Part shown: piece by piece, positions 15,001 to 28,614 of the stretch
Layout of the letters: each line of letters begins with the position of its first letter
How positions within the stretch are numbered: position 1 is the first letter of the stretch
Assembly: GCA_002269645.1 (NCBI GenBank)
Contig: NIVC01000037.1
Span: 186,001 to 250,000 of the forward strand
Direction: 5' to 3'
Source of the DNA: Macrostomum lignano
Lineage: Eukaryota
DNA length: 64,000 nucleotides
The notes under the pieces: generated by a model
Told to the model about the DNA's origin: nothing
The model's input: the letters and a program-made list of their open reading frames with translations, nothing else
Database searches by the model: none
Position numbers and translations under genes: made by a program

Positions 15001-18000
15001 CCTGTCTGTCTTCCACTTCTCCAACTGAAGGCAGTGCTACCAGTTCCTCGGCTGCTGAATGCAGGGAAGATATAAATTACAGAAGTATTGAGCTCGTGAT
15101 CCCTACTCACGCCACTATGCTATAGGTATGCTAAACCAGGGCCCCGATCAAGGTTTGTGCAAGGACTGCTCAAGTATTAGAAGAACGGAAAAATGCATTT
15201 CTTAGAACTTTTTAGGAGGCTAGGAAGAAATACATTACGTAGCTAGAAAGTTTTGATTTTTTCAGCACAAAAATTGTTATTGCTTTTGATTTGTATTGTG
15301 TTTATTATAGCTCTATTGATACTCATAACGTTTTTCGTTCAGAAAATTAGGATTCGAATGTCAATTTTATGTTCTACGTACTATTGTACATGTCCTGTGT
15401 CTAAAAACCGTTAAAATGGTTGATGAGTATCAATAGAGCTGTAGGAAACTCAAAGCATATCAAAGGCTGAACACGAGGTCTCCCTACTATCAAAATCCTA
15501 AAACTTTCCAAGGATCAGTCCTTGGGTTTGTGTCTGTTCTCAGCTCTCTTCTCTCTTCCTCTCTCTCCCATGTCATTTTCTCTCCGTTCATCTATAAACT
15601 CATCTCTCATCTCATCTATCAACTCATCTCTTATTTCATCTCTTATCTATCAATTATAGCCTCTCCCCTCTCTTCTCTCCTCCATTCCCTCTCCTTTCCT
15701 CTAACCCCTGTGCTAAACGATTGCTGATTTAGTTTTTGAAAAGGATTTGCGTGCTAAATTAAAAATATTCCCTTTTTTCAAGTGAATGTACTGAAACGGA
15801 AAGGGGCATTAAATAATCTCATGGCTCCTAATGAATTCATGAAATTGAACTTCTGATTCATAATGCATTTTTTAAATAAAGTAGGTAGACTTCTCAAAGA
15901 GTAGTGGAAAAATGGTGGATGAAATTGAATTAGTTATAGCCTGCATCGCCATTAAAGGATATAAGCTTAACGAGAGCGCAATGTGTGAGAAGAGTGCAAA
16001 AAACACTTAAAAAAATTACCTGCTAAACAGATCGATGTTGAAGAAGACGTACTCGCCATTGATGAAGCCGTGTTCGTAGGCCTTGATCATGATGTCCCTG
16101 ACTGTGTCTGGGTCAGCGCACAGCACCACAACTGCAGTGCAACAACAGGAATGTTTTAGAGCATATAATAATCATTATTGATTACACCTGCCCCAATTGG
16201 GCTAGATGTGCAACCGACAGCTCAGCCGCAGCTATTGCGCGGCGCATCTGAAGGCTGCGTACGGCTGTTCAGTCCAAGGACTGGGGGGGTCGCCACACAC
16301 CCTCAATTACCCCAGCTAATGCTGAACCCCATCAAACCGATTCAAAGAAAATCGAACCCCCACTCGTACAACCCCCTAGTAACAGTATACAGTTTATACA
16401 AGCCGGCATGCTGGCTAAAATACTATATAATACAATAGTCAATCTCATCAGCTCAACTGCAAACAATGAATGAACGCATGGTGATGTCGGCAGGTCAGAC
16501 CAGCAGGGCCCAGTCAATACGGCATGTGCCACGACTATACATAGGTCAGACGGGAGCAATAGTTCCGTCAACCCCCAAGACCGATTGCGTGCAGGAGAAT
16601 GGGGCCAAGCACCATCCCCAACCCATCATATGCCCAAGGCGGGGTGGGGGGCGGCCGATTCCCGCTCGAAGGCGCGCAAAAGTTCAGGCCATGTGCGGAT
16701 CTCCCGAAAGCGAGCACACGCAGGCGGGTCCGTATTGCGAATGCCGCAAACCCCATGGGGGGGTCGACACCTCTTTTTCCACTGCTCGCTTGACAGGCCT
16801 CCCATCCTCGGACCATTTTCCATCTCTCTCTCCCTCTCACTCCCTCGCTTCTCTCCAGCTGTCATCCAAAGCGGACGAGAGGATTAGTTGCCAACTAATG
16901 AGAAGATGGCAAATCTGATTAGCCATGGACGATGGAAGGGCATGGGGGTAGATACTCGCGGAGCTGGGACTTTGAGTCGGCGACAGACAAAGCGCTGAAA
17001 TTCTGAAAAATACGAGCCGTAAAACTCTATTCCCGGTGTTGAAACGCACTCCGAACTTCGTCTCGCATGACTCGAAACACCTCGCGATGAAAGTGCGTAT
17101 TGTTTGGCGCGTACGGCAGCTTGCGGACGATGTAGTTGTTCTGGTGGCTGAATCGCTTTTCAATCGCGTTACACATTAGCCGGCCCTGGGCTGCCATCAG
17201 CTCCTGGGTGTTGTAATCTGGCTGAGTGTTGACCTCATCTGGTACATGCACTAGCAGGAGACTCTGCACAGGCCTTGGCGGCCATTTGTAGTAGCGAAAT
17301 ATCGAGAGCAGCATGTTCTCCAGGTTCTGGCTGATTGCGCCAACGCGAACAAGGTTGAAATACTCGGTCTTGCTGTCCAAAGCGCTGGCCGCCCCGCCTG
17401 AGGAGATGATGGGCTTCTGGTAAAGATGGTAGCCGTTGTAGCGGGCGACCGCGGCCAGACTGAATGAGCAGAACGGGCCTGGCAACGGGAGTGTTTTTAA
17501 AGCTTTTGCATCCGTAAGTAAAACTGATGGTCGGCCATGGCTTCTTCCAGAGACATACTTCACTACAAAGTGGTTGCTCTCCCAATCTGCCCCTTCGTCA
17601 CCTTCTGCACGCACTTCAACGAGGCGCGGAGACGTCACCTCGGACACCCTCTAAGGCTGGAGGAGCTCACCACCAGGGACTGGATCCGTGACCTACGCCG
17701 CGCATTCGTCCGGGACTCCGGACGGATGAAGAGCGCAGACGCTGGCGAGGGGTGGGTGCAGCTCCAAGGCTAGCGCCTTTCTGTTTTCAGCTTGGGGTAG
17801 CGATATGAGCCCCGTCAGTAGTAAGTAAAAATGTGACTCTGAATAATCTTGTTGTTGCGGTTACATGAATAAGCCTCTAAATCTCCAAGTGTTAACGATC
17901 TGGGTGTTAATAAAATAGCCGATCAGAAACCAACTCCAACCGAGCAAGTGAGTCTAATAGTATGCTAGTGGCTGCGTGACCTCTCGTCTGTCCTCCACTG

Positions 18001-18730
18001 TCTGACTCAAGCGTTGGTCCCGCGACGACGCCCCCCACTAGCAGTAATTCAGCTCAAATTCGCTGGGCCGACGAACGGCTGTCGTTTCGTTTCATACAGT
18101 AATTATTTTCTCTTCTCTTCCTCCCCCGCTGTGTGCAACTCCAGCGGGGCAAACGTCACCCCTGCTAATCCCCTTCGCTGCACCAGCGCTATGCGGAGTT
18201 CCGTGCAACTACCAGAAATTACCAAGCCCCCCTCCCCTGCCTCACCAAGATCCCCAGTTGCTCCCAGCTGGGGAATTTGGCCCTTATTCGAAACAGCAGC
18301 AGAGCCTATCGCAAGCTGGCACACAACAGCTGAAAAAATAGTGTGCACTTTCCAGATTTCTCCCGGGCTAACAACTCCCTGTATTATTGACACCAGTTGC
18401 TAGTGCTGACTCACCCAGCATAACGTCAACCTCGCGCAGCAGCAGCAGTCCCACCACAGGTGCCACCTTGTAGTCGCACTGGCTGTCGTTGGCCACCACG
18501 CGGACCCTCAGGCCGGTGAGCAGACCCATAGAGCTGGCGGTTTCCAACGCGACGTCAACAGCTGGCCGCGCCGCCTCGAGGCTCATGCCCGGCACCCGGT
18601 GCCGCAGGGCCGGCAGGAAGACGGAGATGGTCAGGTCCCGGCCGATGGCCCGCGGCGTGAGGATCGCGACGGCCAGAAAGAGAAGCGGAAGAACCGGTAG
18701 CCGACAGTCGCTGGTCATTCCAGCTGTCAT
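6027..18730 (-). CDS. Receptor (membrane) guanylyl cyclase, natriuretic-peptide-receptor-like; 3' part lies outside the window
   Basis: Nine GT-AG exons with consistent phases: 18415-18730, 17050-17478, 16020-16131, 13215-13780, 9428-9914, 8754-8952, 8072-8240, 6702-6869, 6027-6505 (2925 nt, 975 codons). They encode a signal peptide, ANF-receptor domain ([39 protein letters not shown]), a TM helix ([21 protein letters not shown]), a kinase-homology domain ([31 protein letters not shown]), a coiled coil ([18 protein letters not shown]) and the start of the cyclase domain ([12 protein letters not shown]). Confidence 0.95.
6910..7555. repeat. (TATC)n microsatellite, intronic
   Basis: Perfect array of about 650 bp; source of the LSIY-repeat ORF. 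Confidence 0.99.
8258..8735. repeat. Compound (GACT)n then (AACT)n microsatellite filling an intron
   Basis: The array occupies almost the whole 8241-8753 intron. Confidence 0.98.
8990..9310. repeat. About 23-bp minisatellite (aactcaaactgtaaacacaccgg)n
   Basis: About 13 tandem copies in intron 8953-9427. Confidence 0.95.
10003..10400. repeat. 14-bp minisatellite (catcactgtcaccc)n
   Basis: Near-perfect tandem array. Confidence 0.98.
11360..11680. repeat. (GATA)n microsatellite
   Basis: Direct reading; a few interruptions. Confidence 0.98.
12130..13190. repeat. 19-bp minisatellite (ccattccacacaatccact)n
   Basis: About 55 copies with higher-order variant blocks; source of the MEW/HST repeat ORFs. 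Confidence 0.98.
14767..14843. repeat. (TC)n microsatellite
   Basis: Direct reading. Confidence 0.97.
15160..15524. mobile_element. hAT-like MITE with CAAGGACTG termini and an 8-bp target-site duplication
   Basis: Starts caaggactg and ends cagtccttg. It is flanked by GGTTTGTG at 15152-15159 and 15525-15532. The internal tttttcagcacaaaaattgttattgctttt segment is shared with the 50528-50968 element. Confidence 0.85.
17524..17820 (+). mobile_element. 5'-truncated LINE 3' fragment with a 10-bp target-site duplication
   Basis: Encodes [37 protein letters not shown], homologous to the ORF2 C-terminus. It ends in agccccgtcagta and is flanked by gtaagtaaaa at 17514-17523 and 17821-17830. Confidence 0.85.
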
Positions 18731-28100: not shown

Positions 28101-28614
28101 ATTAATTGATCTGTTGATTAATTTTTTGTTTATTAGATTTACTGATTTGTCAAGAGGTCCTGAAGGCATTACGACAGTGCTCCTGCAGAAAGCTGGAGAT
28201 TTTCCGTGAGTTTCTAGTTCATAAAAAAGCCCTATATATAAATTCCTACCCTGACGAGACATTGTAGAAGTACTGGCTCATCCGGTAGCTGAGGTAATAC
28301 GGGTCCACCGTGTCCGTCGCCTCGGAGACAGCCCGATGGTCATCAGCGAAATCATACCACTTGGCGTCCTCGTAGATGACACTGGTGTGCGCGTGAGCCA
28401 GCACCGGGTGACCGGGATACCTGGAGCGCACCCGGTTCCAGGCCAGGTTGTAGGCCGGCAGCAGGCCCGGCAGGCTGACATAGTAGCGCGGATTGCGCGG
28501 CGCCACCAGCAGCAGGCGGAGCGGAACTTCTGCGCAGATTTCGTTGCTACCCGACGATGCAGCAGATGACGACGCTGCCAGCAGCAGCAGCAGCAGCAGA
28601 ATTCGAAGCCGCAT
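25168..28614 (-). CDS. Second ANF/natriuretic-receptor-type extracellular domain (signal peptide plus N-terminal lobe); only two exons are firmly supported
   Basis: Exon 28250-28614 (ATG MRLRILLLLLLLAASS.., LLLVAPRNPRYYVSLPGLLPAYNLAWNRV) ends in phase 2 at GG|gtag. Exon 25168-25589 (IHAIFGPTIDYSV..RIPMLTVGA..TLVRL..NGWRRVTVIY) starts in phase 2 after ctcag and ends in phase 1 at T|gtgag. The motifs align by eye with NPR-family LGPxC / PLLTAGA / GW..V.ILY. Confidence 0.8.
25632..26140. repeat. 16-bp minisatellite (catctaatcatgggga)n
   Basis: Degenerate tandem array starting about 40 nt from the splice acceptor at 25590. Confidence 0.93.
26540..26870. repeat. 22-bp minisatellite (gtctactcagcattctataatg)n
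   Basis: About 14 copies, decaying to about 27020. Confidence 0.95.
27717..28125. repeat. (GATT)n microsatellite
   Basis: Direct reading. Confidence 0.97.

Follow-up and report, generated by a model that had tools for sequence, protein, structure and literature searches.

The UGT1A locus and the clustered protocadherins contain sets of 5' modules that have start codons of their own and are spliced to common constant exons, and the downstream variable exons lack an acceptor. Among receptor guanylyl cyclases, the isoforms gcy-28.c and gcy-28.d of C. elegans share their 3' end and differ in promoter and start codon (PMC9249223). A search of the literature for guanylyl cyclases of Macrostomum lignano, and for receptor cyclases with alternative first exons, returned nothing specific. 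Here, a stretch of 64,000 nucleotides from the M. lignano genome (assembly GCA_002269645.1, contig NIVC01000037.1, positions 186,001 to 250,000; hereafter the window, whose first letter is position 1) was analysed with a focus on two exons, referred to as the orphan exons, which encode the N-terminal half of an ANF-receptor domain, preceded by a signal peptide, and are located upstream of a receptor guanylyl cyclase gene. It is tentatively proposed that the orphan exons may represent a second, alternative two-exon 5' module of this downstream cyclase gene, a possibility that we favour with some reserve. Features described below are on the reverse (-) strand unless marked (+); the repeats at 19590-20760 and 29175-31603 are given by position only.

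Structure and coding integrity of the orphan exons

Orphan exon 1 (28250-28614) opens with its own start codon, ATG 28614 (MRLRILLLLLLLAASSS..), and encodes a typical signal peptide (MRLRILLLLLLLAASSSAASS) followed by the initial ~100 residues of an ANF-receptor domain of divergent sequence; counted from this ATG it is 365 nucleotides long, ends in phase 2 and is followed, after 28250, by the donor GG/GTAGGA. Orphan exon 2 (25168-25589; 422 nucleotides) encodes the second quarter of the domain (FGPTIDYSV..IPMLTVGALDEAFADKSE..), is preceded by the acceptor ..ggctcag/G and ends in phase 1 at the donor T/GTGAGT, which is a full consensus match. The intron between them (25590-28249) measures 2660 nucleotides and is filled by tandem arrays with units of 16, 22 and 12 nucleotides. 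Once joined, the two exons yield 262 stop-free codons with no frameshift and with canonical GT/AG dinucleotides at every site, and the chance of an open frame of this length was estimated at P ~0.0045 by Markov resampling with matched dinucleotide content. The original prediction had read in these exons a signal peptide followed by half an ANF-receptor domain, the N-terminal one; its coordinates proved to be exact, and the product is matched by Pfam ANF_receptor above the gathering score (30.2 bits versus 25.4; 3.2e-7) at profile positions 32-127 of 353. No transmembrane segment is encoded. Orphan exon 1 contains, at codon 13/14 and after a (CTG)7 run, a sequence that resembles an acceptor (ctgctgctggcag/CG, 28579-28582), and this site could be a trans-splice or alternative acceptor, or an annotation artefact common to public models.

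The GC content at third codon positions is 0.77 in orphan exon 1 and 0.89 in orphan exon 2, with values of 0.72-0.82 in the cyclase exons. Codon usage was scanned with a model whose training set was made up of other exons of the window and did not include the orphan exons; it gave 27-43 bits per 90 nucleotides for the orphan exons, on a par with real exons (24-36 in those of the cyclase gene). None of the pseudogene hallmarks that were looked for, namely disabling mutations, lost splice sites and loss of codon bias, was found in the orphan exons. As ~3% of all point substitutions in their 786 nucleotides create a stop, a neutral copy, indels included, would be expected to acquire its first disabling change after roughly 1-2% divergence. 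The available data support the view that the orphan module is an intact coding unit of exon grade and of the NPR/guanylyl cyclase type.

When compared with the NPR-like N-terminal halves of other animals, the orphan product is 21-30% identical over most of its length, with BLASTP E values down to 4e-12, and among PDB entries it matches residues 128-203 of NPR-C (E = 0.002). Its identity to exons 1-2 of the neighbouring cyclase gene amounts to 19% over 72 residues (E = 0.026), in agreement with the earlier statement that the two N-terminal halves are very different. This divergence is ancient, and long neutral decay is therefore excluded. No close parent copy of the orphan module was found among 1.84 billion protein representatives, a search in which the only copies were those of the same exon pair, these being the models P0025, from this locus, and P0001; protein searches with the module returned gene models only. 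In NPR-A, the position that corresponds to the end of orphan exon 2 is residue ~208 of ~430, and a complete ANF-receptor domain (both lobes, ~350 profile positions) is not encoded by the orphan exons alone. Towards this end the orphan product can be aligned without gaps to the end of cyclase exon 2, C-terminal helix included (EILLSRVGDSKS on the orphan side), and its cysteine C227 shares an alignment column with cyclase C208. Both cysteines of the first disulfide are missing from the orphan product (DSQC replaced by DAKW, GPFC by GPTI), a paired loss which has the appearance of evolution constrained by folding and not of decay.

The downstream receptor guanylyl cyclase gene

The downstream gene is a receptor guanylyl cyclase of the NPR/gcy-28-like type, in which an ANF-receptor domain, a single transmembrane segment and a kinase-homology domain are present, and its database matches carry gcy-28-like names. 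Cyclase exon 1 (18415-18730) encodes a signal peptide behind its own start codon, ATG 18730, as the orphan module does behind ATG 28614, together with the first strand-helix-strand of a conservative NPR-like domain whose alignment to NPR-A begins at residue 2; it ends in phase 1 at the donor G/GTGAGT. Exon 2 (17050-17478) has a phase 1 acceptor and also ends in phase 1, at the donor A/GTGCGT. Exon 3 (16020-16131), which carries the proposed common acceptor, contains a cysteine (C253) that aligns with NPR-A C213, and exon 4 (13215-13780) encodes the C-terminal half of the extracellular domain. The transmembrane segment and the juxtamembrane region are encoded by exon 5 (9430-9914, the 3' end at ~9430 being approximate), and the kinase-homology exons are contained within 9038-8733, 8402-8052 and 6894-6679, with PK_Tyr_Ser-Thr matches (1e-9 and 3e-9) in 9038-8733 and 8402-8052. 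The first cyclase-domain exon is located within 6680-5967 (Guanylate_cyc positions 2-34 of 183, 4e-6), and the remainder of the catalytic domain is beyond the left end of the window, past an inserted retrotransposon. This insertion, which sits within the cyclase gene past its first catalytic-domain exon, is of the LINE (long interspersed nuclear element) type, without long terminal repeats, and carries an open reading frame of 817 residues (1338-3791, +) for an endonuclease and a reverse transcriptase. Directly after the exon 4 donor, a minisatellite (12100-13210) that is open in all three frames takes up about one third of the 3.3 kb intron 4.

The cyclase extracellular domain aligns with NPR-A end to end (E = 1.5e-52), and the Pfam ANF_receptor matches on exons 1 and 2 are at or slightly under the curated cut-off. 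Its mature form contains six cysteines (85, 109, 208, 253, 465 and 472), in columns that fit the three disulfides of NPR-A, which we take to be C60-C86, C164-C213 and C423-C432; by the same assumption, C208 would presumably be the disulfide partner of C253 in exon 3.

A candidate junction between orphan exon 2 and cyclase exon 3

According to the reading favoured here, transcription would begin upstream of 28614, from a separate promoter, and the transcript would be spliced from 28250 to 25589 and then from 25168 to 16131, with cyclase exons 1-2 being skipped. In the predicted product, a radically different N-terminal extracellular half would be combined with the unchanged remainder of the receptor, from the C-terminal half-domain through the transmembrane segment and the kinase-homology domain to the cyclase. 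The join from 25168 to 16131 reads ..DSKS-F-VVLCADP and is in frame, as the original prediction had it, with no stop through exons 3-5, and the resulting chimera has one extracellular domain of canonical length. It had also been anticipated that orphan exon 2 ends in phase 1 at the position equivalent to the end of cyclase exon 2, and this is borne out by the gap-free alignment, in which both ends are located just before VVLC. The first introns are not equivalent, that of the orphan module being 26 nucleotides upstream of that of the cyclase gene and in another phase, and only the second intron position is common to both.

The boundary between exons 2 and 3 corresponds to NPR-A residue 208/209. 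In the fold of NPR-A and NPR-C, residues ~1-130 plus a later segment presumably form the membrane-distal lobe and residues ~130-270 plus a C-terminal segment the membrane-proximal lobe, and the chain of such binding proteins passes between the lobes several times. As the boundary is inside the membrane-proximal lobe, the exchanged unit would be a half domain and the chimera a mosaic in both lobes, and the earlier description of the unit as a swappable N-terminal lobe has to be abandoned: what may be exchanged is the N-terminal segment of the membrane-distal lobe plus approximately the first 80 residues, or ~60% of the first segment, of the membrane-proximal lobe. In NPR-type domains the N-terminal half contributes a large share of the dimer interface and some of the ligand pocket, so that the two isoforms would be expected to differ in partner and/or ligand. 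It is unlikely that half of a two-lobed binding-protein fold can fold alone, and this consideration, together with the absence of any other exon from the following 6.4 kb, is counted in favour of splicing into the cyclase gene, as is the presence of orphan C227 in the column of the presumed partner of the exon 3 cysteine.

The interval between the two modules

The interval from the orphan exon 2 donor to the cyclase ATG (18731-25167) comprises 6437 nucleotides and contains no detectable exon. It had been described as almost all repeats, which is overstated: ~2/3 consists of tandem or higher-order repeat. Searches with tblastn, in which 29 homologues were used at E values up to 10, detected no receptor exon in 18731-25167 or upstream of 28614; the queries were extracellular-domain proteins of the guanylyl cyclase/NPR type, some of which reach through the transmembrane segment and one into the kinase-homology domain. 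Likewise, no exon-grade coding signal was found in 18731-25167, where codon usage peaks at 20 bits per 90 nucleotides versus 24-43 in real exons, and both approaches thus agree with the earlier claim that no transmembrane, kinase or cyclase exon is present in this 6.4 kb. A weak match at 32822-32911 (+) to the motif SFVGAFHDAV, which recurred at E values of at least 0.78, came from related queries and was treated as noise. An Rfam scan of the whole window gave no match. When translation is continued past the orphan exon 2 donor, 283 codons of low-complexity Ser/Leu/Pro repeat follow before a stop at 24023. Runs of telomere-like (CCCTAA)n are found at 19649-19712 and 20226-20281, within a degenerate higher-order repeat of ~620-640 nucleotides (19590-20760).

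Beginning 26 nucleotides past the orphan exon 2 donor, a tandem array that is CT-rich in the transcript sense (24282-25141; unit of 28-30 nucleotides) has a complementary counterpart in cyclase intron 2, namely a single GA-rich element, again in the transcript sense, at 16819-16851, which is 83-91% complementary to the array unit. Across the 64 kb, complementary partners of the array (with up to 3 mismatches per 22 nucleotides) are restricted to this element and to a (GA)n tract at ~14760-14842 in intron 3. An RNA bridge between such sequences, by which cyclase exons 1-2 would be looped out, was considered and was rejected as evidence, being a weak lead of low complexity and little specificity. 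In this regard, the intron 2 element is the fifth-best partner of the array among 573 windows and the best is the intron 3 tract (14760-14842), whose better pairing would favour an out-of-frame join, the orphan donor being out of frame with cyclase exon 4.

Public gene models of the locus

UniRef models of M. lignano match the orphan exons at 99% identity, and three UniProt models of this species contain them, namely P0001, P0002 and P0025, the latter corresponding to A0A1I8JKT3, 'Guanylate cyclase'. P0001 and P0002 terminate where orphan exon 2 ends or close to that point. That these two might be pseudogenised copies was considered and set aside, as their many compensating frameshifts with hardly any substitutions look like long-read indel errors of an old assembly. 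A0A1I8JKT3, in which orphan exons 1-2 are followed in one frame by part of cyclase exon 1 and by exons 2-4, is the sole public model to link the two; it differs by three residues and shows the adjacency of orphan exons and cyclase gene in an independent assembly copy. The internal donor that it uses (25219-25220; GGG/GTGCTG) is weak, agreeing with the consensus at 3 of 6 positions, and the strong GTGAGT donor is situated 52 nucleotides beyond it; its internal acceptor, in cyclase exon 1 (18478-18479; gacagccag/TGC), is weak as well and has a purine-rich tract. This model looks like a merged pipeline prediction, in which a gene without a terminal exon was joined to its neighbour. AlphaFold2 applied to P0025 gave no confident fold (mean predicted local distance difference test score of 46.6) and was uninformative. 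Exact-protein look-ups of P0001, P0002, P0025 and four contiguous open reading frames of the window retrieved no record, and a word-indexed protein search missed both P0025 (99% identical) and P0031 (64%), such that its negatives for M. lignano do not amount to absence.

A related extracellular domain with unequally diverged halves

A complete extracellular domain is encoded by L001, a Logan contig of 1677 nucleotides from run SRR28338163, in which the equivalents of exons 1-4 are contiguous and are followed by GTGAGT exactly at the position of the exon 4 donor. Its C-terminal half is 64% identical to that encoded by exons 3-4 (at the nucleotide level, 82% for exon 3 and 70% for exon 4), and its N-terminal half shares only 22-24% identity with each of the two N-terminal halves of the window. 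As the halves of L001 diverge unequally, the N-terminal half is the hypervariable part in this lineage, a pattern that fits the logic of a variable sensor and also fits plain fast evolution. In its most extended form, the proposal would be that two promoter-linked two-exon cassettes place either of two anciently diverged N-terminal halves (~19% identical) on one constant part, giving two receptors with different ligand and/or dimerisation specificity, which would transfer the logic of UGT1A to the interior of one binding-protein fold, and that the L001 pattern reflects cassette turnover; this extended form is conceivable and rather doubtful.

Weighing the alternative explanations

Several observations weigh against the use of the orphan exons as an alternative 5' module. 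The in-frame join carries very little weight by itself, as it is expected from a conserved intron phase. A junction would be in frame by chance in 1 of 3 cases, and the intron that precedes V(V/I)(L/M)C is apparently an old one in the family, judging from homologues among which one genomic open reading frame opens just upstream of the motif and several begin at the next Met; given such a conserved position, any guanylyl cyclase fragment that ends there would end in phase 1, a dead duplicate included. Two further sites, the exon 2 acceptor at 17478 and an AG at 18733, three bases before the cyclase ATG, can likewise be joined to the orphan donor in frame. In contrast to the downstream variable exons of UGT1A and the protocadherins, cyclase exon 2 possesses an in-frame acceptor (17478), so skipping would not be automatic, and since this exon has its own acceptor and donor, the default outcome of read-through would be orphan-exon 2-exon 3, with a quarter of the domain duplicated. 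A mechanism for skipping exon 2 was looked for and none was found, the intronic complementarity being of low complexity. The chimera would contain seven cysteines, an odd number, compared with four in the orphan product alone. As for the public models, the junction of A0A1I8JKT3 is 25220/18478 (..VFELAG to CDYKVAP..) and not 25168/16131, and all three models begin orphan exon 1 at or near the internal AG, thereby omitting the ATG and the signal peptide. Finally, the intron from 25168 to 16131 would be 9036 nucleotides long; the mean intron length of M. lignano is 1.1-1.4 kb (PMC5730564).

The most serious competitor, although in our judgement a rather unlikely one, is that an old, divergent tandem paralogue has lost everything from exon 3 onward by a recent deletion or rearrangement in this repeat-rich region, and that the orphan exons are what survives of its 5' end, intact so far only for lack of time, any splicing into the cyclase gene being incidental. 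Such a truncated duplicate was already among the alternatives of the original prediction, and it stays viable. It agrees with the fact that nothing homologous to exon 3 onward is left in 18731-25167 or upstream of 28614, with the dominance of fast-evolving tandem arrays in the interval, with the termination of two public models, P0001 and P0002, around the end of orphan exon 2, and with the differing position of the first intron, which fits an independent old gene better than a designed cassette. The highly duplicated and repeat-rich nature of the M. lignano genome (PMC5730564) is counted on the same side. On the other hand, the loss would have to be very recent, given that no disabling change has accumulated and codon bias is undiminished, and the same arrangement is found in the second assembly copy with few residues different. 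It is clearly less probable that one long gene, or a read-through product, contains both N-terminal halves through the joins 25220/18478, 25168/17478 or 25168/18733. All three leave the reading frame open, A0A1I8JKT3 has exactly the first of them with GT/AG at both sites, and conjoined transcripts usually join an upstream donor to the exon 2 acceptor of the next gene. However, the sites used by A0A1I8JKT3 are weak, with the strong donor close by, and the model is a pipeline prediction; moreover, the domain would be partly duplicated and non-canonical, and one variant would have an internal signal peptide.

Slightly more remote still is a separate small gene, whether with its own messenger RNA, which would end at a poly(A) site or in a short exon that escaped detection within the 6.4 kb and would encode a secreted half-domain acting as a decoy or modulator, or as an upstream cistron from which the cyclase messenger RNA is freed by spliced-leader trans-splicing. 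A signal peptide without a transmembrane segment, an even count of cysteines and, again, two public models that end at or near orphan exon 2 are what would be expected of such a gene. It is also counted in its favour that trans-splicing affects 38.8% of M. lignano genes and that polycistronic units make up ~7% of the transcriptional units of this species (PMC5730564). Against it, approximately half of the fold is encoded, as seen from the Pfam match and from the end at NPR-A ~208, the frame runs on through 283 low-complexity codons past the donor, and no exon-grade signal follows in the interval, and the secreted decoy that had been listed earlier as an alternative is weak for the first two of these reasons. 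A spacing of 6.4 kb also looks long for an operon.

With regard to the alternative 5' module itself, what stands of the original prediction of alternative receptor N-termini is an intact module that ends at the right position with no exons of its own downstream; what does not stand is the exchange of a lobe and the weight given to the frame, and the public junction differs. We infer that the upstream promoter and the junction from 25168 to 16131 would be used, with exon 2 skipped, and that the product would be functional; this is reasonably regarded as the best single functional explanation, which draws on arguments of integrity plus necessity and has a mechanistic gap in the skipping of exon 2.

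Genomic neighbourhood

Upstream of the orphan exons and transcribed away from them, a DEG/ENaC (amiloride-sensitive sodium channel) gene is located at 35479-36930 and 37046-37429 (+; Pfam ASC 3e-23). The 6.9 kb between this gene and the start of the orphan exons is repeat-rich and would contain any orphan promoter. It includes a 20-nucleotide tandem array of more than 60 copies (29175-30443) and a trinucleotide array of ~700 nucleotides (30872-31603), which would read as poly-Ser, poly-Val or poly-Leu depending on the frame, both upstream of the orphan ATG. Further away, the window contains a retroelement fragment with ribonuclease H and reverse transcriptase (41613-42221), an exon of a Ras-family small GTPase (47750-48211, +) and leucine-rich-repeat exons (57047-57643, +).

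Significance and comparison with known systems

If the orphan exons are indeed spliced into the cyclase gene, this would represent a clear case in which alternative promoters serve to diversify a sensor by exchanging one half of its bilobed ligand-binding fold, and it would mean that ANF-receptor halves can be mixed between partners that are only ~19% identical. It would also open a genetic route, by isoform-specific knock-down in a flatworm that is amenable to transgenesis, to the signal sensed by the extracellular domain of an orphan cyclase of the gcy-28 type. If they are not spliced, the locus would be an ordinary truncated paralogue in a rearrangement-prone genome, and A0A1I8JKT3 would serve as a warning about a merged public model.

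With regard to the structurally characterised receptors NPR-A and NPR-C (PDB 1DP4, 1JDN and 1YK0), the cyclase domain is a full NPR-A match with six cysteines and the orphan product matches NPR-C 128-203, whereas the latter covers NPR-A 1 to ~208 only, lacks the cysteines of the first disulfide and is not a complete clearance-receptor-like domain. The conjoined prediction A0A1I8JKT3 has in common with the proposed arrangement that a link between orphan exons and cyclase gene is already drawn in public annotation, and differs from it in keeping both N-terminal halves. The resemblance to UGT1A and the protocadherins consists of 5' modules with their own start codons and presumably their own promoters, an N-terminal part that recognises ligand or substrate and a donor phase that matches the first constant acceptor; the differences are that there are two modules of two exons each and that the variable unit would be half a domain. 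The worm gcy-28 isoforms are verified complementary DNAs, unlike the arrangement deduced here from genomic DNA, in which ~240 mature residues at ~19% identity would be exchanged; nevertheless, they belong to the same receptor guanylyl cyclase subfamily, and their two-start arrangement provides a precedent for an alternative 5' module in M. lignano.

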